This document shows, piece after piece, positions 1-21,181 of a stretch of 64,000 bases of DNA (the stretch's first letter is position 1; every line of letters starts with the position of its first letter). A program made the translations under genes and the position numbers. A model generated the notes under the pieces. The model was not told the origin of the DNA and did not search any database. It saw only the letters and a program-made list of their open reading frames with translations. Source of the DNA: Lepidodermella squamata (lineage: Eukaryota > Animalia > Gastrotricha); assembly GCA_047495785.1 (NCBI GenBank), contig JBLDXI010000066.1:682001-746000 (forward strand), written 5' to 3'.

Positions 1-559
1 CCGAGTAATCTCCAAGTACGCGGTATACCGTGAAATCTAACTGGACGAGTCCGCAACTTATTGAGTAATTAAAAGAGTAATTTGCGAAAAAGGTAAAGTC
101 GTAATGTGTCACCGTGGATTTTTTAATTAATTTAATTTAATTTAATTTTGTAACATGGACAAAAGAGAAAGCTGCGAATAACTTTCTGGCTATAGCTGCG
201 TAATTTTGCTCAATTCGCCCCTGGCAGAGGGCGACTTAGACAGTAATGCCGAAGTTATGAGGTGAATAATAGTTATTGCAAATATTTGCTTATGGAAGTT
301 TTATTAATAATACAACTTTTGCTATGATCATCTTTAATATTACTATTATTATTATTTTACCGTTGGTGCCTGCGAAAAATTAATGCTTATCCGCCCCCAG
401 CACAACCAAGTTGTTTTTCGGCGGAGCGTATGCTCAGTTGTCAATCTAAATATAACTCTTTCCAAAAAACCACAAGAAGCTCCAACGGCCGAATTGTCTT
501 CTAGTCATTCATCCGCATTTCGCTTTATAATCTACCGTGAATTGCAATTTTTTCAAAAG

Positions 560-4168: not shown

Positions 4169-5016
4169 TCACTTGTCCATAACCGGACTGTCGCTGTCCT
4201 GTCGGAACAACACCGCTACGTACACCTCATCTGACAAATTGATCTCCATAGCGATGTCGTAAGGCCGTCCATAGGAGTAGGCCGAGCCATTCGAGTCTGC
4301 CTTCGTATACACGAAGCTCTGCCAGGTACCACGGTACAAATTCTCGAACTTCTGTTTCAAGTAATACGCCACGGCTTGCCCAGATTTCAAACCGAACTGC
4401 TGGAAGGCCTCGTCGAACGCCTGAATAGCTGCTTTTTCGACTTCGTCCGGGAGTAGCTTGTCTTTTGATACAGTCTTCGCTGCTGACGGTAATAATGAGT
4501 ACGACATACCAGCAGAAGTCAAATTTAGAAGCTTTCCCAAATCTAAGCGGGCAATACGAAATCGGTAAAAACTTGTGTTGAAGTCCAGAATCCGGCAAAC
4601 TCACCATCTGAAACTGCAATATCCGAGGAACTTAGCTGGTCCAATTCTGGCAGGAAATTAAAATAAGTATTTTTCATCAAATAAGTTTAAAAGAGGAATC
4701 ATATCGAATTCAAAGGTTACGTATCAAAAAACATTAGGTAACTATTTAATTCTGGTACGCCAGAAAATGAGATCTAAGAGAACGGGTTCGCGAGATTTGG
4801 AGAAGAAGATAAGTAAATAGTTTTCCTCAAACTTTGGTAGTTTCACCGTGTGGGTGTTACAATGTAACAAGTGTGTATCATGCTTATCATGCTATACTGT
4901 ATAAGTATCTCACGATTTTCTATTGCTGGTATTGAGGTTTCGAGGGAAATGGAGACCGCATCTGCAGCGCAGCACATTGTCAATAGAGCAAAACTCAATA
5001 GGGCTGGCCAATGCAT
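4169..5016 (-). CDS. Signal peptide + microexons + dynein light chain (LC8)-like domain; exons 5016-4914, 4646-4605, 4542-4510, 4461-4169; 156 aa
   Basis: MHWPALLSFALLTMCCAADA signal; 42 and 33 nt phase-1 exons; last exon AAIQAFDEAFQQF...VAYYLKQKFENLYRGTWQSFV...VAVLFR parallels LC8 (IAxxIKxxFDxxYxxTWHCIV...AILLFK). Intron 3 (48 nt) is in frame with a weak acceptor, so it may be retained. Confidence 0.7.
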
Positions 5017-5066
5017 TTTGGACATTTTCAAATAATAAAAAACCTAAAATAGAGATAACATTCTAA

Positions 5067-8277: not shown

Positions 8278-9592
8278 ATGATATCCCTGCCCTCTCCGAA
8301 ATGTAAGGTTTGCAACTGCCCCGTTGTGCCACGGGCTTGCTATCAACCGAGAACTTGTACTGCTTGTCAGAAATTTTTCCGCCGCAACTGTGAGAACTGG
8401 CAGCGATTGAGGTGCACCCATAATTGCGATGATTCACCCATTTTGAAGGAGAGAAAACCTCGGAATTGGTACAAATTCGGTTGTCCGAAATGTCGATTCG
8501 AAGCATGTGTTCGCGCAGGTCTTAAAAGTAAGTTCGTATAAAATATAAAAAGGCCATTTGTTGAATATTCCATTAAATAATTTAGGCAAGTACTATATGG
8601 CGTCTGAAACAGAGAAAAATCCTTCGGATTCGCCCTCCAAAGAACGAAGCAGCCAGTGTACTCCGATACAAAACCCGACGGTTTACAATGGCGAGGACGT
8701 CGAGAACATCATACGGCTGGCAATAACGGCACTAACTTATCTTCACCAGCTTGAATTCGTGAGCCTCTCGATTTTCTTCTTCATTCGAGGATGAAATTGA
8801 CGTTTTTAAGCTTCCTTTGAGGGAACAAATCAGTATTGAAGATGTGCACAATCCTCAAATTTTCTCGCAAATCTTGGTGCGGAGCATCAGTGAAGTATTG
8901 TGCATAGGCCTTGAATTCTCAACATTCTTGAAAGGTTTGCTAACCCTGGCGCTCAATATTACGTGCAATTGAAACGAGATGCGTTAGATTCATTTTCAGA
9001 TACCTGAAAATGACGTCCCAGCAATGATGCGTGGTAGCTGGAAGAAAATACATTTGGCTTACTCAGCTCTGCCATCAACTACAGGCAGCATGTTAATAGG
9101 ACCGAACAATCTGGACAATTTTTTGACCTTGGATCCTGAATTGCGGGTTCGTTTGAAAGGAAACAAACTGAATCCTACTATAAAAAAAACCTTTCCCAGT
9201 GTGTTGTTGAGGCCGAAGAAGAGGTTGCGTCTGAAATAAGTAAATGGGGCCCTACGCTGCCGGAAATCGCAGTCTTCAATCTTCGGCTGTTCTTGAAAAG
9301 TAAGACCGGAAATTCTCTAGAAAATTCACTTCTGATCAAAAATGGGGTTCTCTTAACAGATGCGATGGCATGCAGTTATCATTCTCGCCGTCTCAAGCAG
9401 CGAGTGGATACAGCATTCTCAATGGTTTGCTCAACGCGATTCAGGGAGAATCCTGGTAAAGCTCTCGTGCAGGTGGGTGCGGTCGAGCGACTGCTCGCCG
9501 TAGAAGCAGACCTAATGAACCGGGGTGCAGCGGCCGTTTCGGCAAGGCGTCGGTTGGATGACCAGTCCTCCGACTATTTTCACCGGTTTTGA
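8278..9592 (+). CDS. Divergent nuclear hormone receptor (C4 zinc-finger DBD + degenerate LBD), multi-exon
   Basis: CKVC...CTACQKFFRR...CTHNC...CPKCRFEACVRAGL; exons 8278-8527, 8586-8758, 8811-~8934 join in phase; later exons (ENDVPAMMRGSWKKIHL; TLPEIAVFNLRLFL) resemble LBD helices; 3' junctions not fully resolved. Confidence 0.75.
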
Positions 9593-10632: not shown

Positions 10633-13494
10633 CTAACCAAGAAAGGTAGGAAGAGGACCAAGAGGAAGCCGGCTATTCAGCAGTACGAAGGGTGAACGGG
10701 GTGGGGGCTGAGGCGACAGGCGGACGCTCTCGAGGTCCTCGCGCAGAGGCAGGACAAACTGGGCAGCATTGGTAGCATATCGCCGTTGGCACTGCGCAAA
10801 GAAGGCCGCCACACCTGGAACACGGCAGCGGCTTTCCAGCTCGGAGACACTAACGCGATCGTCGCGGCGGACGCTGAGGATCGCCCGAAGACAGTCATTC
10901 TGGAGGACAGAGAGCCGCCGCAGCTGCTGCTTCGACGCGGTGGAGAGGCAGATGTTGCCGAACGACCAGATCGAACGGATCAGCGTGAGGTACAACATCC
11001 GCCGCCAATGACGAGAAAGACCAGGGGCGTGCAGGGCACGCCGGAAAAAACCCATGTTCTCGTGGCAGCGAGAGACTACGTGATCGATATGAGCTTTCCA
11101 GGTGAGCTTGGGGTCCAAACGTACGCCGAGCACGCGCATCGAGGAAACTTGCGGAATGCGCGAACCGTTGAGACGGAGATCTAGCGGAGCCTGGCCGAAA
11201 GGCATGGCCTCGCTTTTCGCAGGGTTGAAGTGCTGGCGCCACTTTGACGCCCATGACGAGATACGGATAAGTTCAAGCTGCGTACAGCGTTGCGCCGCGT
11301 TGAAGGACCGCCCTTCGCCCACGACGGTAAGATCGTCGGCGTAAGCCTGAAGCAGGGCACCATCGACACTGGGCGCCGAGAGAAGGTCGGCAGTGTACAG
11401 AATATACAAAAGCGGAGAGAGCGGGGAACCCTGTGGGACACCGCAGTTAACCGTGACCTGTCGACTGAGGGAGCCGGCGACACGGGCCTGGAGGCGGCGA
11501 TCGCGTAAGTAGTCGGCCATCCAGCCAACAAGGTTTCGCGGCAGCGGCAGCAGGGAGAGCTTGTGGATCAGACCCGCATGCCACACAGAATCATATGCGG
11601 CCTGCACGTCGAGCCCAGCGAGGACAGTCTTCCGGCGACGAGACCGACTGTGAAAGACACGGTGAACAATCCTAAGGGGCACGTCGGGGGCTGAACGATG
11701 GGAGCGAAACGCATACTGCTCTTCAGGCAACAGATGACGATCATCGAGGAAAGTCGTCGTCCAGCGGGCGACGACGGCCTCAAGCAGCTTCGCATCAGTG
11801 GGAAGCAGAGAGATGGGGCGCTGAGATGAGACCAAGTCACGGGGCTTTCCGGCCTTAGGGATGGGGACGACGATGGCTTCTTTCCAGGCAGCAGGCACGT
11901 AGCGACTGCCAAGAGACATATTGTACAGGCGGCGAAGATGCGACTGCAGCACAGAACCTCCCCACTGGATGAAAATGTTCTGCACACCGTCCGCCCCCGG
12001 GGCCTTGAAGGGTCGAAGACGACCGACAGCGTCAGCGAGCAGCCGTTGACTGACACTGAATTCTCCAGGGCCAGGCAGACGAATCGTAGCGGAGCAGTGT
12101 AGATTGCTGTCGGCAGTGGAGTCAGCCTCCAACTGATGCCACCAATGGCGTGTGGCAGCGTCAGCAGCGGGATCGGAGTATGGGGACATCGGTCGCACAA
12201 AGTGGTCGAGCAGCGCGTCGGCGAGGGCCGTCGAAGGTGGCAAGAGCCGCCCATCGTCGAGCTTCATGTAGGCGATAGACTGAGGCTGGTGACGTTTGTC
12301 GAGGCGACGCAGGCGAGCATACGCCTCGCGGTAACGGTGCTGAGCAGACAGGGCTTCCACGTAGCGCAGGTTTGAGACATCACGCCGCAGTTGATGAGCA
12401 GCCTTGGCAGCGCGAAATTCAGCGTCAACTACCCGCAGCCGCTCGCGGAGGACAGGATCCACGTGACCGCCAAGTGCTCGTTCGAGGACTCGTTTCTTCT
12501 TCAGACAGAAACGCATCTCCGCAGACATGGCGATTTTCTTTAGCTGGGACTTATCGGCGAGAGGAACGTGTTGGCGACGAGCTTCGACGATTGCGGCGTT
12601 GATGGCGGCGCGATAGACAGCGATGAGACTAGTAGGCTCGCCAACAGCAGGAAGCGGGATTGCGCCAAGCAGACGGCGAAGAGTGCGGAAGTAGCCGAAA
12701 CGATCAGCGCGCGAAACATCAAAGCGAGGCGCCGGATCCGTGAGCTCGAAAAGGCGGGACGGGCCGCCAACCGGCGCCACGTTCAGTGTGATTGACGTGC
12801 AGAAATGGTCACTGGTGAGACGGTCGCCAACAGAGACACCGCCGGCGAGGAGTCGCAGAGCGGAATCATTGAGAATCCAAATGTCGAGCGTCGACAGCGA
12901 GCCAGTTGCAATGTGCAGATGAGTGGGCTTCGGCGACCGGAGCACAGACAGACCAAGGCGGTTAGCGAGTTGTTGCACGGAAAAACCATTGGAAGTCCAT
13001 AGATCACGACCCCACAAAGGCGACTTAGCATTCAGATCGCCACTGAAGAAACACGGCATACCGGCCGCAGTGGCCTCGGTAAACTCGGACTCTAAGAAGC
13101 GAAGGTCCAGGGAGGACGACGGAGGGCAGTAACCAGTGACAAACCGCACCACAGGGCCGTGGGGTGACGGAACGAGATCCAAGCGAAGCCATTCGCTGAG
13201 CTTGCTGCCGGTCAGAGCCAGCCGCCGCTCGGCGACCACGAGAGCGCCCTCCTGAACTAGAATTGCCGAACCACCACGAGCACCACTGAGCAGGAGGTCC
13301 TCTGGATCCTGTTCGCGATCACACCTAAACACTGCATATTTGCTAAAGACAACACTGGAGAGAGAGTAAAGAAAAGTTTCATTGAGAAAAAAAGCAAGAG
13401 GATTATAGGTGTCTAGTTGCAAGTTAAGTTCAAAGTCCTTATCATTGATACCGCGAGGGTTCCACTGGACGACGACGTGGGACGTACTAGCCAT
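10633..13494 (-). CDS. LINE ORF2: apurinic-type endonuclease + reverse transcriptase (953 aa from MASTSHVVVQWN)
   Basis: APE motifs QWNPRG, LNET, GDLNA, LDI, SDH; RT motifs KAPGADG, RPISLL, QYAFR, DVQAAYDSV, GVPQGSPLSPLLY, YADD, LGVRLD; no RNase H seen. Confidence 0.95.
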   Translation of the reverse strand: MASTSHVVVQWNPRGINDKDFELNLQLDTYNPLAFFLNETFLYSLSSVVFSKYAVFRCDREQDPEDLLLSGARGGSAILVQEGALVVAERRLALTGSKLSEWLRLDLVPSPHGPVVRFVTGYCPPSSSLDLRFLESEFTEATAAGMPCFFSGDLNAKSPLWGRDLWTSNGFSVQQLANRLGLSVLRSPKPTHLHIATGSLSTLDIWILNDSALRLLAGGVSVGDRLTSDHFCTSITLNVAPVGGPSRLFELTDPAPRFDVSRADRFGYFRTLRRLLGAIPLPAVGEPTSLIAVYRAAINAAIVEARRQHVPLADKSQLKKIAMSAEMRFCLKKKRVLERALGGHVDPVLRERLRVVDAEFRAAKAAHQLRRDVSNLRYVEALSAQHRYREAYARLRRLDKRHQPQSIAYMKLDDGRLLPPSTALADALLDHFVRPMSPYSDPAADAATRHWWHQLEADSTADSNLHCSATIRLPGPGEFSVSQRLLADAVGRLRPFKAPGADGVQNIFIQWGGSVLQSHLRRLYNMSLGSRYVPAAWKEAIVVPIPKAGKPRDLVSSQRPISLLPTDAKLLEAVVARWTTTFLDDRHLLPEEQYAFRSHRSAPDVPLRIVHRVFHSRSRRRKTVLAGLDVQAAYDSVWHAGLIHKLSLLPLPRNLVGWMADYLRDRRLQARVAGSLSRQVTVNCGVPQGSPLSPLLYILYTADLLSAPSVDGALLQAYADDLTVVGEGRSFNAAQRCTQLELIRISSWASKWRQHFNPAKSEAMPFGQAPLDLRLNGSRIPQVSSMRVLGVRLDPKLTWKAHIDHVVSRCHENMGFFRRALHAPGLSRHWRRMLYLTLIRSIWSFGNICLSTASKQQLRRLSVLQNDCLRAILSVRRDDRVSVSELESRCRVPGVAAFFAQCQRRYATNAAQFVLPLREDLESVRLSPQPPPRSPFVLLNSRLPLGPLPTFLG

Positions 13495-14559
13495 TGGACG
13501 ACGTGGTGGCTGGGGCGAGCGAGCAGAGCTTGACAAAAATGCGGTCGACAGCGTGTTCAACCAAGGAGAGACGATGAACAAACGACTCGTCGAACCGCTG
13601 AAGACGATCCTCCATATACCCGAAGAGTCGAGCACCATCCGGAGACAAAAATTGATGACGCAAAGCAGGGGCAGCAGGCGGGAGCTGGAGCGTGGGAGGC
13701 GTCCCGGGTTGGCGGGTGGGCCGCGGGCCAGCAAATTCGCGAGTATTCAACAGATGCGTCGGTCCACCCTGGAGATGGGGCGGTTTCACGTGGCGTCGTT
13801 GCTCACGCTCAGCAACTTTCACTTCCTTGGCTTCACTGACGGCGCGACGGCGGGCGGTCTCCTTAGCCTGGGCTACGGTAGGAGCTGACGCAGATCATCG
13901 GCGGAGTAAAAGCCTGGCAGGCGATACGAGATAACACTGCGCTTGTCGCGGGCGATATGAGGGGACACGGGCTGCCGAGGATCGGACTCGCCCGGACGGT
14001 GAATACGAAACTCGGACTTGGCGAAAGCATCGGCAGGAAAGCCATCCCTTTTAAGCAAACGGTCAGCGTCAGTCGCAGTCGCACACTTTACACGGAGACC
14101 GCCACTCTTCATGACGTCGACGGCAACGGGCGCAAGCCAATCCGCAACTCGGGCGAGTTCAGGCTCAAGCTGGCGACGATTCATAGTCGTGATGTTATCG
14201 ATGATAACGACGCGGTATTTGTTAGGGCTGGGAGCGGCGCCTGGCGGACCGCCGAAGTCAGGTGCAGCGGTACGCGGGGTCTTGACCTTGCGGGACACTT
14301 GGCGCCAAGGGTCCGTCGAGGCCCCCACAGGTGGTGGTGGTGGTGGCGGGACCGCGCCATCGACAACCATGCCCTCAGGCGGCTGCGCCGGAGGCTGGCC
14401 AGACGGCGGCACAGCGGAGCGAGCCGTACGCGCGGCCCGGATGGTGACGAGGAGCTGCATGACCGCCTCGAGTTCGTCGAGAGCGAGATCGGCAACGTTC
14501 AACTTCTTAGCTCGTTCCTCTTGAGTCATCCCAAACGGCCGCTTCTGTGGCAAGGCCAT
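13487..14559 (-). pseudogene. LINE ORF1 (gag-like), frameshifted near 13880
   Basis: MALPQKRPF... ends at LRQLLP*; a second frame (APTVAQAKETARRR...TTSSNG*) continues to a stop overlapping the ORF2 ATG; no CCHC knuckles present. Confidence 0.65.
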
Positions 14560-14781
14560 TCGTGACGGTTTGTAAGCTGTCTCAGAGCAGTGGCGCAAAG
14601 AGATCAGCAGATATAAATTGTGTCGCTGGTTAGCACAGACGAACACCAACAATTGTAATGTAAAAGCACAACCTCAGAAAATTTAATATTCAATCGCAGA
14701 TATTCGCAATATTCAAAAGTAGCCCTTAGACAGTTTTAGTCAACTAGTTCATTTTACCTTGACATGATGCGATTTGATGTA

Positions 14782-17457
14782 TCAGCATGAAGACTTCTGA
14801 CGAGTTGCACCTCGCGCCATCAGTAGCTTGGCAATGGCATCCTGATCCCAGCAGACAGCGTAGTCCAGTGCTCCTCTGCCAGCCCTACTTAAAACTTGTG
14901 GGTTTGCTCCTTTCTCCAACAACAATCGTACAGCTTCGATAGGCCCATAGCTAGCGGCCGTTGTTAACGCCGTTTCGCCGAAAAAAGTAATAGCGTTGAT
15001 TTTCGCGTTGCGTTGCATCAAATACCGCAAAATGTCGATGTGCCCATATCGAGCCGCCATAATCAATGCTGTCATGCCGTCGGTCTGCTCAGCGTCGATA
15101 TCCGCGTTACGATCGAGCAGAAGTCTCGCCGCTTCAACGTGATTATACGCGGCCGCATAATGTAGCGCCGTATAGCCATAGCGTTCCTCCTTAGCATTGA
15201 CATCAGCACCTCGATCCAAGAACATGCGAGCAACTAGCAGCCGCTGGTTCCGAAGCCGATTAGCACACTGCATCAAGCGGTGAAGCAGCGTCCCCTTTTG
15301 GTTAGAGCCCGCCCCACACGTGTTATAGGTATTGGGGTCACGCCAGTTTGGATCGAATTTGCGGTTTGTCGCAGCGTCAATCTTCGCCACTAAATGTCTC
15401 ACCTCGTCCACATCCAGCGTCTCGCCACAAGCAGTAGACAACCGCTCATAAAGCCAGGGAACCTAAATGGCAGGAACGACAACATATTACAAGCTCAAAG
15501 CTATAATTATACGGTGAAAACCGAGAGAAACGCACGATAGCATTGATATGATGTTTTCTGAATATCAAGTACCCAGGAAGGTTTTTTCACCAGCAGTACA
15601 AATGCACGTAAATTGAGCAGTTAGTATTTCCTGAATTTTCCTAAAATTTCCCGAAATTTCCTTAATTTTCTAAATGTTTTGTAAATTATGCTGAATATGT
15701 TCCTGAAATGTTGATGACATTCAAATTAGCACGTCAAGAACATCCATATCATCTAGTAACATTTCTGAGATTTTCCAAGTTACACGTTACACTGTATATT
15801 TTTGGCTAATCTATTGAGCCTAATTTCGAGCGTGAGCGACATTGTGTAAGCTACAACCAAGTCCTGGCCGGGCGAAAATTCTGAATATTACTGTAAGTAG
15901 CTATATTACAAATATTTTGGCTACAGCAGCATTATTTCCGGCTACCGCCAAGTCCAGTGCTGTAAGGCCTTCTTTTGACCTTGCCTCCCTATTCGCCCCT
16001 TTCTCGAGCAAAAGCAGAACACTGTCGACGTCCCCACGATTGGACGCGGCTAACAGCGCCGTGAAGCCGGTGTCACTCTTGGCCTCGATATCGGCGCTGT
16101 GATCGAGCAGCAGTTTGACTGCATCAGCTTGCTGCTTATCGGCCGCTATAATCAACGCCGTTTCGCCAGCTCTATTCTTAACCTCTGTGTTAGCGTTGCG
16201 GTCGAGCAGCATACTCGCTGCTTCGACGTGCCCATTCTCGGCCGCAAACATCAACGCCGTGTAGCCGTAATATTTCTCCTTTGCATCGACATCAGCGCCA
16301 CGATCTACGAACAGGCGAGCGATTTCCAGCCGCTGCTCCGGAAGCTCGTGGGCACACTCCATCAAGCGGTGAAGCAGCGTGCCGTTGTGTATATAGCCAA
16401 AAATACACGTGTTGTACTTATGACTCCAGTTAGGATCGAAGTGGCCATTTGTTGCTTGGTCGATCTCCGCAACCAATCGCTTCGCTTCGGCCACGTCCAG
16501 CTCGTCTCCTACGGCGTCCGATAGCTTCGCGTAGAGCAAACGAATCTATCCAGGGGGAAAAGTTCAAACAACTAACATTAAGAAAAGCTAAACTGATTAT
16601 TCTTAGCAGTAAGACATGGAATATGCCTTGCCTCTAGCCCTAAGCAGATCTAGTATCTAGTATCAAGTAGACTAGCAGCTGGTTTACCGTTCGGCCGCAG
16701 TCATATCCAGCCCAGTCGGCAGCACACTTACACGAGTTGGGAGCGTAGCAGAAGCCGCCATTCAAGCATTTCTGCTCGCAAACAGCTAAAATAATCAAAA
16801 ACGAATTATTGGAGAACTTTCAGCGCGAACTAAGCACACGTACGCAGTCTGCTATGTATCGCGTCATTAGTCGATCGAAGCTTGGCCAGCTCTTATGTTA
16901 GGGACAAGAAAATCAGCATTTGGGTTTTTTAGAAATAAGACAAATTCACCTCCTTGAGTTAAATTATCTGCGGAGCTTAGCTTTGCCAGCTCTAATTCGT
17001 GATTAGAAAGTCAAAAATTATTGACGCCCAGAAAGTATAGATGAATATAGAATACATACCCTCAGAAATCAAATCAAGAAGCTTTCTCAAATCTAACGAG
17101 CGATAAGGAAATCGGTAAAAATTGGTGTTGAAGTCCAAAAACCGGTAAACTAACCTTCAGGAACTGCATTATTCGTGGAATTTAGCTTTGCCAGTTCTGG
17201 CACAAGAAACGAAATGAGTCATTGGCATAAATAAGAGGAATCATATCGAATCTCTTTATGAAGCATTCAACTATTATTATGTTTACAATTTTGGAACAAC
17301 GCAAGAAGCAATACCTAATATAAGAGAAGAAAATATTAGCGAGTTACAACTCACGATTTTTTATTGCTGGAATTGAGGTTTCGACTGAACCCGAGACTGC
17401 ATCTGCAGCGCAGCAAATTGTCACGAGACTAAATATTAATAGGGCCGGCCAATGCAT
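14782..17457 (-). CDS. Signal peptide + 4 microexons + EGF + two ankyrin-repeat blocks; exons 17457-17355, 17196-17155, 17092-17060, 16991-16950, 16891-16844, 16785-16688, 16545-15910, 15462-14782; 560 aa
   Basis: All junctions GT-AG and phase-compatible (1683 nt); signal MHWPALLIFSLVTICCAADA; EGF CEQKCLNGGFCYAPNSCKCAADWAGYDC; ANK motifs GYTALHYAA, GMTALIMAA, GETALIIAA; neither ANK ORF has its own ATG (ORF track starts at TTG). Confidence 0.8.
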
Positions 17458-18833: not shown

Positions 18834-21181
18834 ATGGAGAGTTTGTTAAGATTCAAGGTTTTCTTCGCATTGATCTCCGCTAGCTTGGAAAGTAAGTGAT
18901 TTACTGCGAGTACGTTCTGAGAATCTATTCTATTAGTATCTGTAGTACTTACCCTTTCAACTTAAAATAGTTGAATTGAATGTGCCAATTGCAATCAATA
19001 TCAGTGCGCGGAGTAACGGGTAACGGGGGGAATGGGCTCTTAGTTCACTTACCGCGTTTAGTTACCCCGCTTAATACGACACCCCGTTGCTCCACTTTGA
19101 CCCTCTCCGCTATTATGGGGGATAGTATTTGAACATCGGAAACCATCGCGTAAGCTGCGCCCAACCATGTTTCAGCGTTAAAACAAGGTGTTTCCTCGTT
19201 GGGGGTCAAGGGGATTAGTGGGTATCCCTTCAAAGTGGCGCAACGGGGTGTCGTATTAAGCGGGATAATACGGTATATCATGGAATGTTAACCTGGTAAA
19301 TTTATCAACGTTGAATATCAGTTAGAAGCTACGCAAGCGCCCAGTACCCATTTTTGTTTTTGTATTTGTTGTTCGTTGCTGTCGCCCTCGCGCACATGGC
19401 TATACTTTCCTTACCACTGATCGTTTGCAATTCGGATGGTAACCGGGCGCAAATTTGCAATCTACCGTTAATTTACGCATTTATTTTACCGAACCGACTC
19501 ATAATTGATGATATTTCGCCGTATTAATTCCAAGCAATAAGTATACAATAGAAATGATTGACAGATTTCCCAGCAACATTTCGCACGCGATTCGTATTGC
19601 GTAGTGCTGTACGTTACCTAATAAAGTGCGCAGTTATCGATGTTAGATGCTTCGATTTCGTCTACTGCACTGATAATTAATAAATAATTCGGACAATTTT
19701 GAATCAATCATTTTAAAAGTGTCGATTCATTTCAAACTTTTCTACGTATTTACCAGTTTGCGTTCCAGTGTGCCAGCAGAGAAATGGCTTTTGTAACAAC
19801 GCAACCAATACATGCACATGTCTGGCTCGATTCACAGGTACGGATTGCTCGCAAGGTTTGTTACTTATCCCTCTCGAAAACGTAATCCTGACTTCGGTAC
19901 CTACAGCCATCGGAATGCCGCTGTTCGATCCAAGAACATATTCGCCCGATTTTTCCTACCTTAACGACGGAAATTATCGTAACCCCTCGCCCCAGGCTTC
20001 AGCATTACGAATTTACTGCTATTTTTTGTAGAAAATAACTGGGAATATGCCAGTACCGCGGTCTACCCCAATGTCGGCCCGAACAGCGAGATAATTCTCG
20101 CCACGAGCCAGCTCAACAACGAAGCGAGACTGTCGAGCAGAAAAGTAAACTGCCTATTAAATATCGGATATTCAACATAATTTCATTTCTTCCAAGCCCT
20201 TTCTGGTTGCTGATTTTTCAATCAACGTGACAATGCATCTCGATGGAGCTGCAGGATCCACGCTCGATATATACTCGATATCTGTTATATCGAATTCTTC
20301 ATTCAACTACTCAGCATCTGGCACTTACAAGCCGATTGATAGCAACAATTTCGCCGGATTTAATTTTAAGTACAACGGCAATTTACAGCGCTTCACCCTG
20401 TTCTCGTCCCCATTACGAACAGTCTTAGGCACCTCGAATTCGGTGAGCTTTGGCAAGGAGCTCACCCGAGGCCGTATCAGCGTTGGCATTGTAGTTAGAC
20501 GTGGGGCGAAACTGTCGGCTGATGTTTGCTCGCCAACCCAGTGCTCGGCAGTTTATAGCGACATCGACTCGCCGGGGTTCTTGCCCATCGATCCTACCAT
20601 GGAACTGCCCATAATTCATGTCTTCGGGGGGAATTACGGCTCTTCGAACCCTATCAGAGTGGTAGACATACGCACGTACCTATTTTGTAAGCAGCTTTCT
20701 GCTCATTCATACAATAGCTTAATCGTGATTCCTATATTCATAGATGATAAGCCCAAATGCGATCCTCCGTGTAAAAATGGGAGATGCTACGGGTTAAACA
20801 TGTGCGCCTGCAAAGCTGGTTGGACTGGAGCTTCGTGCAACAGGCGTGAGTATTGGAGCTTCATAATAATACAAGCATTTAAGGCTCATTTTGATTTTTG
20901 ATTTCATCAGAAATTTGCGGATCTGTGATTTGTCCTACGACAGCTTACTGCACCGCACCGAGCACAAACACCTGCACCTGTTTCGACAAGTGGAGAACCG
21001 GGGCTGATTGTTTAACAGGTTGATTCTTTACCAAGTTAAGGAGATATGAATCATTGCTGATAATCGTTTAACAGCAATCTGCGACTGTACGGTGGCCCGG
21101 CGATGTCTGTATAAGCTGTGCGATTGCCCGGACGGTTCTCAACAGCATGATTGCAATAATCCGACGCTTGGTGAATTCTGA
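18834..21181 (+). CDS. Secreted multi-exon protein with EGF-like domains flanking a central beta-rich domain
   Basis: Signal-like exon MESLLRFKVFFALISASLE|gtaagt; EGF exons CVPVCQQRNGFC...CTCLARFTGTDC, CDPPCKNGRCYGLNMCACKAGWTGASC, CPTTAYC...CTCFDKWRTGADC; last exon ends PTLGEF*. Confidence 0.7.
19062..19269. mobile_element. MITE-like inverted repeat in intron 1 of the EGF gene
   Basis: ccgcttaatacgacaccccgttgc-ccactttga vs tcaaagtgg-gcaacggggtgtcgtattaagcgg. Confidence 0.7.

Follow-up and report, generated by a model that had tools for sequence, protein, structure and literature searches.

The locus described here raises the question of whether an animal gene can send ankyrin (ANK) repeats out of the cell that makes them, joined to an EGF-like module on the same side of the membrane. 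ANK repeats are classically cytosolic and are the textbook intracellular protein-binding module of animals. In a stretch of 64,000 nucleotides of Lepidodermella squamata DNA (the window), one gene appears to place a leader peptide and an EGF-like exon ahead of two ANK exons. The reading preferred here, with a probability of about 0.7, is that the gene is genuine, is expressed and has as its product a soluble secreted protein of ~560 residues, whose ANK modules would act as extracellular binding heads.

Gene structure, splicing and topology

The gene occupies 17457-14782 on the minus strand of the window, with an ATG at 17457 and a TGA at 14784-14782. Its eight exons encode ~560 residues laid out as a signal peptide, four ELAKL stalk mini-exons of 11-16 residues, one EGF-like exon, and two ANK modules of a single exon each:

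Exon 1, 17457-17355, minus strand: start codon and 34-codon leader (MHWPALLIFSLVTICCAADA, then VSG), ending in phase 1; assigned from sequence.
Exon 2, 17196-17155, minus strand: stalk mini-exon QLAKLNSTNNAVPE, phase 1-1, with one N-x-T sequon; assigned from splice sites and phases.
Exon 3, 17092-17060, minus strand: stalk mini-exon DLRKLLDLISE, phase 1-1.
Exon 4, 16991-16950, minus strand: stalk mini-exon ELAKLSSADNLTQG, phase 1-1, with one N-x-T sequon.
Exon 5, 16891-16844, minus strand: stalk mini-exon ELAKLRSTNDAIHSRL, in which L, L, N, I and L are spaced much as in heptads.
Exon 6, 16785-16688, minus strand: single EGF-like module, C-x3-C-x5-C-x5-C-x-C-x8-C, of the MEGF/PEAR1/nimrod type.
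Exon 7, 16545-15910, minus strand: ANK module 1, 212 residues, a cap and then five ANK repeats.
Exon 8, 15462-14782, minus strand: ANK module 2, 226 residues and the TGA, with a cap as in exon 7.

The introns are GT-AG throughout, and the phases at the exon ends (1, 1, 1, 1, 1, 0, 0) are compatible. In the translations, exons 2-6 hold no in-frame ATG, so the EGF module is translatable from exon 1 only. The predicted protein has four N-x-S/T sequons, two of them in the stalk. Exon 8 finishes with paired cysteines typical of the family (...AVC, 22 residues, then SSC and the stop), its end ...YAVCWDQ...ARGATRQKSSC following the family C-terminal cap pattern ...A-[IV]-C...R-G-A-x-R-x(3,4)-C. A retrotransposon adjoins the gene directly on its 3' side. 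An Rfam search of 14450-14800 gave no match. Elsewhere in the assembly, no COX1 was found, and an intron-less HSP70 matched a metagenome protein at up to 86% identity and full-length named proteins of molluscs, arthropods and a tardigrade at 77-78%, without a rotifer among the 120 matches listed.

Splicing could be followed in contigs from a public sequencing run, X1, which is tentatively taken to be RNA and whose organism label differs from that of the DNA run. In these contigs exon 5 runs directly into exon 6, exon 6 into exon 7 and exon 7 into exon 8, each where predicted (16785/16844, 16545/16688 and 15462/15910), and the joints have CT..AC ends, equivalent to GT..AG on the minus strand. 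The two peptide junctions proposed in the initial annotation, ...YDCGRT/IRLLYAKLSDA and ...AKIF/VPWLYERLSTA, are exactly those in the contigs. X1 coverage spans exon 8 and falls to zero inside intron 7; upstream, depth is 3.6 in the exon 4 bin and low at exon 3. Exons 1 and 2 have no X1 coverage, and their link to the rest of the gene therefore rests on phase, splice sites and conservation among paralogues. The genome may use spliced-leader trans-splicing, in which case 5' ends would be unreadable from DNA alone. The same annotation had suggested shortened isoforms. In-frame stops do occur 15 codons past the exon 6 donor and two codons past the exon 7 donor, but no reads supporting intron retention were seen, and the EGF-only and one-block forms built on these stops are unsupported speculation.

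The leader has a hydrophobic core, PALLIFSLVTICCAA, followed by ADA/VSG, a small-x-small motif with a likely A-x-A cleavage site, as in a signal peptide. Hydropathy was taken as the maximum Kyte-Doolittle mean over 19 residues in each exon; like all searches and the folding, it was run exon by exon. The leader reaches 1.98; the two ANK exons reach 1.18 and 0.89, and the EGF exon 0.12. The highest value after the leader, 1.18, falls within an ANK helix, and there is no further hydrophobic segment of transmembrane length. Since the X1 contigs carry the joints 5-6, 6-7 and 7-8, the ANK exons follow the EGF exon directly once spliced, without a hidden membrane exon in between. The earlier proposal that no transmembrane segment separates EGF from ANK thus holds: X1 crosses both junctions, and the leader alone has a hydrophobicity sufficient for a membrane span. 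For the observed transcripts, the joints and the hydropathy together rule out a hidden transmembrane exon between the two.

Four results support a protein that has a signal peptide, lacks a membrane span and carries ANK immediately after EGF: RNA-like contigs cross the junctions, hydropathy finds no span, paralogues repeat the layout, and Sushi or LDL-A modules precede the same cap in other paralogues.

Domains and the cap-ANK family

Both ANK exons score far above the Pfam cut-offs. The Ank model gives 91.8 bits for exon 7 and 110.6 bits for exon 8 against a cut-off of 21.1, while Ank_2 reaches 90.1 bits in exon 7 and Ank_4 reaches 113.5 bits in exon 8 (cut-offs 21-27 bits). Aligned over 214 columns, the two exons show 51% identity (E 8e-71), and the cap motif is common to both. 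The EGF exon, which is short and single, has six cysteines at positions 2, 6, 12, 18, 20 and 29 of its 32 codons, the spacing of an EGF module, and scores below every Pfam EGF cut-off (EGF_PEAR1L 26.8 against 37.5 bits, E 5e-6; EGF_2 18.9 against 22.1; EGF 17.1 against 21.5).

The AlphaFold2 model of exon 7 (pLDDT 96.3, pTM 0.92) is a continuous ANK stack in which the cap forms two helices and a beta hairpin carrying the FDPNW motif, followed by the five ANK repeats. In a Foldseek search of the PDB, exon 7 matched 6ne2_B with a TM score of 0.82 over 208 of 212 residues and an rmsd of 2.0, the cap included. A profile of 36 caps searched against 1.84 billion protein representatives found no relative; it gave five weak matches, and the two that were inspected are unrelated repetitive proteins. 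A word search with exon 7 returned generic ANK proteins only, mostly with 50-70% query coverage and never covering the cap, and the ESM Atlas gave generic bacterial ANK clusters only. The cap had initially been called novel, which is correct for its sequence but not for its fold. The model and its structural matches rule out a new fold and indicate a diverged extra ANK-like repeat, so that what is new is the cap sequence, while the modelled fold is of a known ANK-like kind.

The gene is one member of a very large lineage-specific family and not a one-off. At least 222 cap-ANK matches occur in the genome, some with internal stops (broken copies), and family members are arranged in tandem. The module is usually a phase-0 exon behind signal peptides and EGF, Sushi or LDL-A modules, and an AG acceptor stands exactly at the cap start, in phase 0, in 28 of 39 caps. 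At this phase-0 exon start the family pattern is Y-x2-L ... I-D-x-x-T-G-G-x-F-D-P-N-W ... C ... N-G-T-L-L-H. Both modules of the window align with 34 paralogous caps, in which Y5 and F36 are invariant and I28, D29, T32, P38, N39 and W40 are at least 90% conserved.

Each part of the gene recurs elsewhere. Two paralogous loci, C36 and C42, repeat the whole leader-stalk-EGF-ANK-ANK layout at ~50-55% protein identity. Homologous leader exons lie upstream of both, exon 5 is 75% identical to its equivalent there, and the EGF exon is 80% identical to the EGF exons that precede their ANK blocks. ELAKL-type mini-exons recur ahead of the EGF exon in paralogues. The neighbouring gene at 4172-5031 shares exon 3 and has a homologous leader exon at 79% identity. 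More than 150 exons in the genome match the EGF exon, and the order EGF then cap-ANK is found at 11 loci besides the studied gene. Other paralogues have signal-peptide-like first exons and Sushi or LDL-A modules ahead of the cap, as well as protease- or trypsin-like starts. At one locus (L040), a partial Sushi module and cap-ANK lie within one uninterrupted open frame.

Cysteines of the modules follow a pattern of pairs. Each of the two cap cysteines is found in 28 of 33 modules. Among 27 distinct C-terminal tails, 13 have both C-terminal cap cysteines and eight have neither, and four of the five tails with only the C-terminal cysteine have a second one 3-4 residues before it. The pairing gives a Fisher p of 0.004, although the sequences are related and not independent. 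This fits C-terminal cysteines that would be gained and lost in pairs, compatible with a disulfide. Over 257 repeats, entropy is highest at repeat positions 13, 10, 5, 14, 3, 16 and 2, the canonical binding face, and framework positions are nearly fixed. Variability of the binding face is a general property of ANK families and is therefore no proof of a recognition repertoire.

Proposed function and rival explanations

It is proposed that a cleavable signal peptide would carry the protein into the secretory pathway. There, the heptad-like ELAKL stalk with its two N-glycosylation sequons would probably space the molecule and may oligomerise it, and one disulfide-bonded EGF-like module would carry a tandem pair of ankyrin modules, in each of which five ANK repeats come after a family-specific N-terminal capping repeat. 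These two modules would be the working parts, with a concave face that varies across the family on an almost invariant framework, and the paired cap cysteines would probably staple the fold for extracellular life, with predicted bonds Cys47-Cys64 in module 1 and Cys204-Cys226 in module 2. In the proposed history, the cap-ANK exon would have been shuffled behind EGF, Sushi, LDL-A and protease-like starts within a large lineage-specific repertoire. Most probably, the protein would recognise or bind ligands outside the cell, as part of humoral defence or of matrix and secretion biology.

A bolder form of this proposal, entertained only tentatively, is that the cap-ANK family makes up a natural DARPin-like humoral recognition repertoire, with hundreds of secreted, disulfide-stapled heads on EGF, Sushi and stalk scaffolds. 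It would include diversified faces rich in aromatic residues, some coupling of protease or complement type, and an ankyrin-based system of extracellular recognition or immunity.

Among the rival explanations, an unlikely one is that the exported protein works within cells that belong to a different organism, be it prey, host or competitor, in the manner of a venom or effector, so that its ANK repeats would meet cytosolic targets after delivery. In the literature searched, pathogen effectors and latrotoxin are the secreted ANK proteins described; the family has the large size, rapid diversification and tandem arrangement often seen in effector and venom families; and the organism label of the transcript-bearing run differs from that of the DNA run. 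However, Pfam finds no pore-forming, translocation or toxin domain in any exon, the EGF, Sushi, LDL-A and trypsin-like partners are typical of extracellular cascades and matrix rather than of delivery systems, and the paired cysteines argue for an oxidising environment.

It is considerably less probable that the protein is tethered to a membrane, whether by a leader that serves as an uncleaved anchor or by a signal of transmembrane or GPI type, encoded in an exon that escaped recognition or at an alternative 3' end. Read in frame 0, introns 6 and 7 include hydrophobic stretches (19-residue hydropathy of 2.0 and 1.9), and the cleavage site of the leader is putative. The X1 contigs nevertheless skip both introns precisely, with the depth of intron 7 at zero, and frame-0 read-through would meet the stops after 15 and two codons already described. 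The C terminus, ...RQKSSC, is hydrophilic, and most paralogues conserve it as the point where the open frame ends. With a signal anchor, too, the EGF and ANK modules would lie outside the cell.

Slightly lower odds are given to the gene being a decaying or non-translated by-product of exon shuffling, transcribed into an RNA whose protein is unmade or functionless. The very large size of the family, the stops inside some of its matches and the retrotransposon next to the gene are in keeping with such a fate, but the eight exons all have open frames in compatible phases, the transcript is accurately spliced, and positions of the framework, the cap and the cysteines are kept even though the paralogues are only ~50% identical. 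Least probable is capture of the ANK exons by horizontal transfer from bacteria or fungi, which would have placed them after an EGF cassette of the animal: of the best public matches, most are metagenome ANK proteins and some are named bacterial (27-50% identity, mostly 35-45%), and the nearest language-model clusters are bacterial ANK families, yet ANK repeats converge on their consensus, which makes such likeness uninformative, the outside matches cover consensus repeats only, the cap is without an outside relative, the modules have conserved phase-0 spliceosomal introns across their many genomic copies, and their G+C of ~0.50-0.55 equals that of neighbouring animal coding exons. Thus, nothing points to the horizontal transfer that had been raised for these exons.

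Under the preferred reading of a soluble secreted protein, hundreds of ANK modules would enter the secretory pathway with EGF, Sushi and LDL-A partners, and evolution would have recruited the fold for binding outside the cell. The literature searched contained no account of an extracellular ANK family in animals; it is a limited open-access collection, which makes this weak evidence. The studied gene is a compact member of the family with partial transcript support, as RNA-like contigs lie over its EGF-ANK junction. It exemplifies the shuffling of the phase-0 cap-ANK exon and is a suitable entry point for work on secretion, glycosylation, disulfides and ligands.

Comparison with known systems

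Notch resembles the predicted protein in combining EGF-like and ANK repeats in one animal polypeptide that enters the secretory pathway. Notch itself contains LNR and RAM modules, tens of EGF repeats and a transmembrane helix, with the ANK domain on the cytosolic side, whereas here one EGF module is spliced directly to ANK with no span, which leaves both on the same side of the membrane. Pfam finds no LNR or Notch family in the gene, no transmembrane segment lies between EGF and ANK, and the gene does not belong to the Notch family.

Latrotoxins, from widow-spider venom, are likewise ANK-rich animal proteins whose site of action lies outside the cell that makes them. They are not known to have a classical signal peptide, and they carry a large N-terminal pore-forming wing/body domain and ~20 repeats. 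In contrast, the studied gene has a classical leader, an EGF module and two six-repeat modules; only leader, stalk and EGF precede its ANK repeats, and Pfam finds neither a toxin domain nor any other family there. The secreted ANK effectors of pathogens (bacterial Ank and oomycete proteins) share export from the producer, and the phrase "secreted ankyrin" occurs in the searched literature in the context of pathogen effectors only. These effectors are delivered to the host cytosol through secretion systems or host-targeting signals, and they are without EGF, Sushi or LDL-A modules and without paired cysteines.

A similar logic of leader, coiled or heptad stalk and variable head is seen in collectins, ficolins and the repeat-based VLRs of lampreys, though as an analogy only. 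Like humoral recognition proteins, the family is large and diversified, with some members linked to protease and Sushi modules in a complement-like manner. The head is ANK instead of a C-type lectin, fibrinogen or LRR domain, and oligomerisation, somatic diversification and an immune role are without support in the studied family.

The closest likeness in structure is to DARPins. Designed proteins of the DARPin type give the best structural matches, the framework stays very close to consensus, and the diversity of the family falls largely at the repeat positions randomised in DARPin libraries. DARPins are artificial and cysteine-free, with designed caps, and they too bind extracellular targets; the cap-ANK proteins, by comparison, form a natural family with an FDPNW hairpin cap, paired cysteines, N-glycosylation sequons and extracellular animal modules. 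If the family is indeed extracellular, it would be a natural counterpart of the engineered DARPins.

Gene structure and the EGF-ANK junctions

The predicted secreted protein is encoded by eight open exons on the minus strand (17457-14782), whose phases are mutually compatible and whose GT-AG introns measure 58-447 bases, giving a coding length by coordinates of 1683 bases (560 codons and a stop). Each exon was searched separately.

Exons of the EGF-ANK-ANK gene
17457-17355 (-): exon 1, begins with ATG; leader with a hydrophobic core, then A-D-A before V-S-G
Exons 2-5 (-): stalk mini-exons of 33-48 bases, symmetric phase 1-1
16785-16688 (-): exon 6, 32 in-frame codons with six cysteines in EGF spacing
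16545-15910 (-): exon 7, one complete ankyrin (ANK) module
15462-14782 (-): exon 8, one complete ANK module

ELAKL or QLAKL opens three of exons 2-5, and N-x-T sequons occur in two. Exons 2-6 contain no in-frame methionine, thus the EGF module can be translated only from exon 1. Both ANK exons, whose blocks are 51% identical, score far above the Pfam threshold. The EGF exon matches Pfam EGF_PEAR1L, EGF_2, and EGF, all below their cut-offs, as is often the case for a single module of 32 residues.

The initial annotation placed EGF and ANK in one protein with no membrane exon between them, and transcript evidence bears this out. Contigs from a public run of 2015 (X1), tentatively taken to be RNA and mostly at least 99% identical to the window, skip 16785/16844, 16545/16688, and 15462/15910, with CT..AC ends on the plus strand at each joint, coinciding exactly with predicted introns 5, 6, and 7. 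Depth in X1 is zero within intron 7 (15570-15803), and a DNA run matching the assembly (X2) covers the region evenly in one 4.4-kb contig. The joints at introns 6 and 7 therefore place the EGF exon directly before ANK module 1 and module 1 directly before module 2; neither ANK exons with their own start nor a hidden membrane exon appeared in the X1 transcripts seen. Since X1 coverage declines toward the 5′ end, being thin over exons 3-5 and absent over exons 1-2, the use of exon 1 in the mRNA is suggested by splice sites, phase, and conservation. The organism code of X1, the source of the spliced transcript at 99% identity or above, differs from that of X2; possible causes are a difference in naming, mixing of the sample, and cohabitation of two animals. 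HSP70 sequence matches place the animal of the assembly among bilaterians that lack close sequenced relatives, with no rotifer among the matches listed.

The predicted absence of a transmembrane segment also held. The 19-residue hydropathy maximum is highest in the leader (1.98), followed by ANK module 1 (1.18), ANK module 2 (0.89), and the EGF exon (0.12). Introns 6 and 7 do contain hydrophobic stretches in frame 0; X1 contigs skip both introns, and frame-0 read-through meets a stop after 15 codons in intron 6 and after 2 in intron 7. The hydrophilic C terminus (...RQKSSC) speaks against a GPI signal.

The cap and the paralogue family

The motif noted at the start of both ANK modules is conserved over 36 aligned caps, in which Y5 and F36 do not vary and conservation is at least 90% for I-D, T, and P-N-W. 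The initial annotation called this cap novel, which stands for its family-specific sequence and fails for its fold. An AlphaFold2 model of the ANK module, built on a 33-sequence paralogue alignment (pLDDT 96.3), places helices at residues 2-15 and 18-31 and a beta hairpin at 41-56, then five regular ANK helix pairs. Foldseek aligned designed six-repeat ANK proteins over 208 of 212 residues (TM 0.82), and a language-model search with residues 1-75 also matched ANK clusters. A new fold was therefore rejected, and the cap is, as modelled, a diverged extra ANK-like capping repeat. Its sequence appears to be lineage-specific: public matches in a word search cover consensus repeats only, and when 1.84 billion representative proteins were searched with a profile of the 36 caps, five weak matches came back, the two inspected being unrelated repetitive proteins.

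Exon 7 matches the 121-Mb assembly at least 222 times; many of these matches begin at query residue 1-5 and thus include the cap. The best EGF-exon matches sit immediately upstream of cap-ANK modules. On contigs C42 and C36 a homologous leader exon is also present, so that the full leader-stalk-EGF-ANK-ANK layout is common to both, and the EGF exon directly precedes cap-ANK at further loci on C43 (three), C60, C32 (two), C3 (two), and C85. The closest paralogues, L013 (C36:816500-823500) and L014/L015 (C42:431000-447000), are near-identical copies that may represent haplotypes left uncollapsed or else segmental duplications of very recent date; the second ANK block has an extra copy on C42. 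Three loci (L017, L020, L021) additionally carry a long divergent ANK array between leader and stalk, and the window gene, lacking this array, is a compact member. Long cap-ANK members hold roughly 15 to 28 near-consensus repeats in a single exon.

Other members combine a signal-peptide-like first exon with a Sushi module (L038, 29.4 bits; L032 and L040 weaker), an LDL-A module (L041, 38.5 bits), or, by eye only, a start resembling a trypsin-like protease (L026, L030, L031). At L040 a partial Sushi and cap-ANK share a single uninterrupted open frame. Of 39 caps, 28 have an AG acceptor with a pyrimidine tract, in phase 0, at precisely the homologous base; the cap-ANK unit thus looks like an exon-shuffling module.

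The partner domains EGF, Sushi, and LDL-A are all disulfide-rich extracellular modules, and the ANK modules carry paired cysteines of their own. Each of two cap cysteines is present in 28 of 33 modules. Cap-ANK frames typically terminate in ...A-[IV]-C ... R-G-A-x-R-x3-4-C; among 27 distinct family tails, 13 have both of these C-terminal-cap cysteines, eight have neither, and five have only the C-terminal one, four of which bear a replacement pair (C-x3-C or C-x4-C) at the very end. This co-occurrence (Fisher p = 0.004) is indicative only, as the sequences are related. Exon 8 holds both pairs, and exon 7, the internal module, the cap pair only. Paired gain and loss is the expectation for disulfides, which are accordingly predicted from sequence here. 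Over 257 distinct repeats, entropy peaks, with many aromatics, at repeat positions 13, 10, 5, 14, 3, 16, and 2, the canonical ANK binding face, and is minimal at framework positions. The variable face is compatible with diversified ligand binding, yet the pattern is generic to ANK families.

Neighbouring elements

4172-5031 (-): gene with the same 5′ cassette (leader exon 79% identical; stalk exon 2 and 3 homologues)
8278-8541 (+): open frame with the cysteine pattern of a nuclear-receptor C4 zinc-finger DNA-binding domain
10633-14652 (-): non-LTR retrotransposon immediately 3′ of the EGF-ANK gene
14673-14704 (-): 32-base piece ending ...TTTCTGAG, then GT, at the 5′ edge of the retrotransposon
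19768-21023 (+): gene with several EGF-like exons of the same C-x-P-x-C...NG-x-C type

Exon 3 of the first gene runs on into a dynein-light-chain type 1 domain (PF01221; 31 bits, cut-off 29.1), placing a signal peptide before another normally cytosolic module. The EGF-like exon type has more than 1000 candidate genome matches, with dense arrays on C24, C73, and C30. The retrotransposon has open frames of 259 and 1033 residues (the second, by eye, endonuclease and reverse transcriptase), G+C of about 60% against about 40% genome-wide, and a DNA depth about three times that of single-copy sequence. The 32-base piece, at a depth of about 100,000 in both X1 and X2, has 508 genome copies, many about 8.46 kb apart in rDNA units, where they lie on the strand of the 5S gene, between it and the SSU start; in the LSU-SSU spacer of one such unit (L051, G000:C2:2917576-2920607), the 5S rRNA gene is encoded on the opposite strand. 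Rfam gave no match, and the piece is a candidate spliced-leader exon, whose retrotransposon copy may derive from trans-spliced RNA.

Proposed function and known systems

We propose that the leader would route the protein into the ER for secretion, with the stalk as a spacer that may oligomerise weakly. Its segments are heptad-like and interrupted by Pro and Gly at exon joints, which suggests short helices and no long coiled coil. The EGF module would act as a rigid disulfide-bonded adaptor, and the two six-repeat ANK modules as extracellular binding heads for a putative ligand. An exported effector or venom-like role is less likely, as the gene encodes neither a delivery nor a toxin domain and the partner modules belong to the kind used in extracellular cascades. 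It is also unlikely that the gene is a non-functional by-product, given its intact frames and its conservation against paralogues about 50% identical. Horizontal transfer of the ANK exons finds no support: outside similarity is confined to consensus repeats, spliceosomal introns are conserved in the modules, and the modules have the same G+C as the coding exons around them. A membrane tether conflicts with the transcripts and with the hydropathy scan.

Text searches of an open-access literature library returned only oomycete and bacterial pathogens for "secreted ankyrin" and only a latrotoxin review for "extracellular ankyrin". In Notch, EGF and ANK likewise occur together but on opposite sides of a membrane, and this defining feature was absent from the window gene when tested. 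Latrotoxins, which are exported ANK proteins, have an N-terminal toxin body that sets them apart, likewise absent here when tested. The ANK modules come closest to DARPins, both in structure and as a functional analogy, and collectin, ficolin, and VLR-type repertoires would be alike in architecture only, by analogy. The fold and domains are already known; the novelty lies in how they are put together, in where the protein is predicted to reside, in a cap peculiar to this family, and in how far the family has expanded. The window contributes a compact member, RNA-like contigs over the EGF-ANK junction, cysteine-pair covariation, and a structural reading of the cap.
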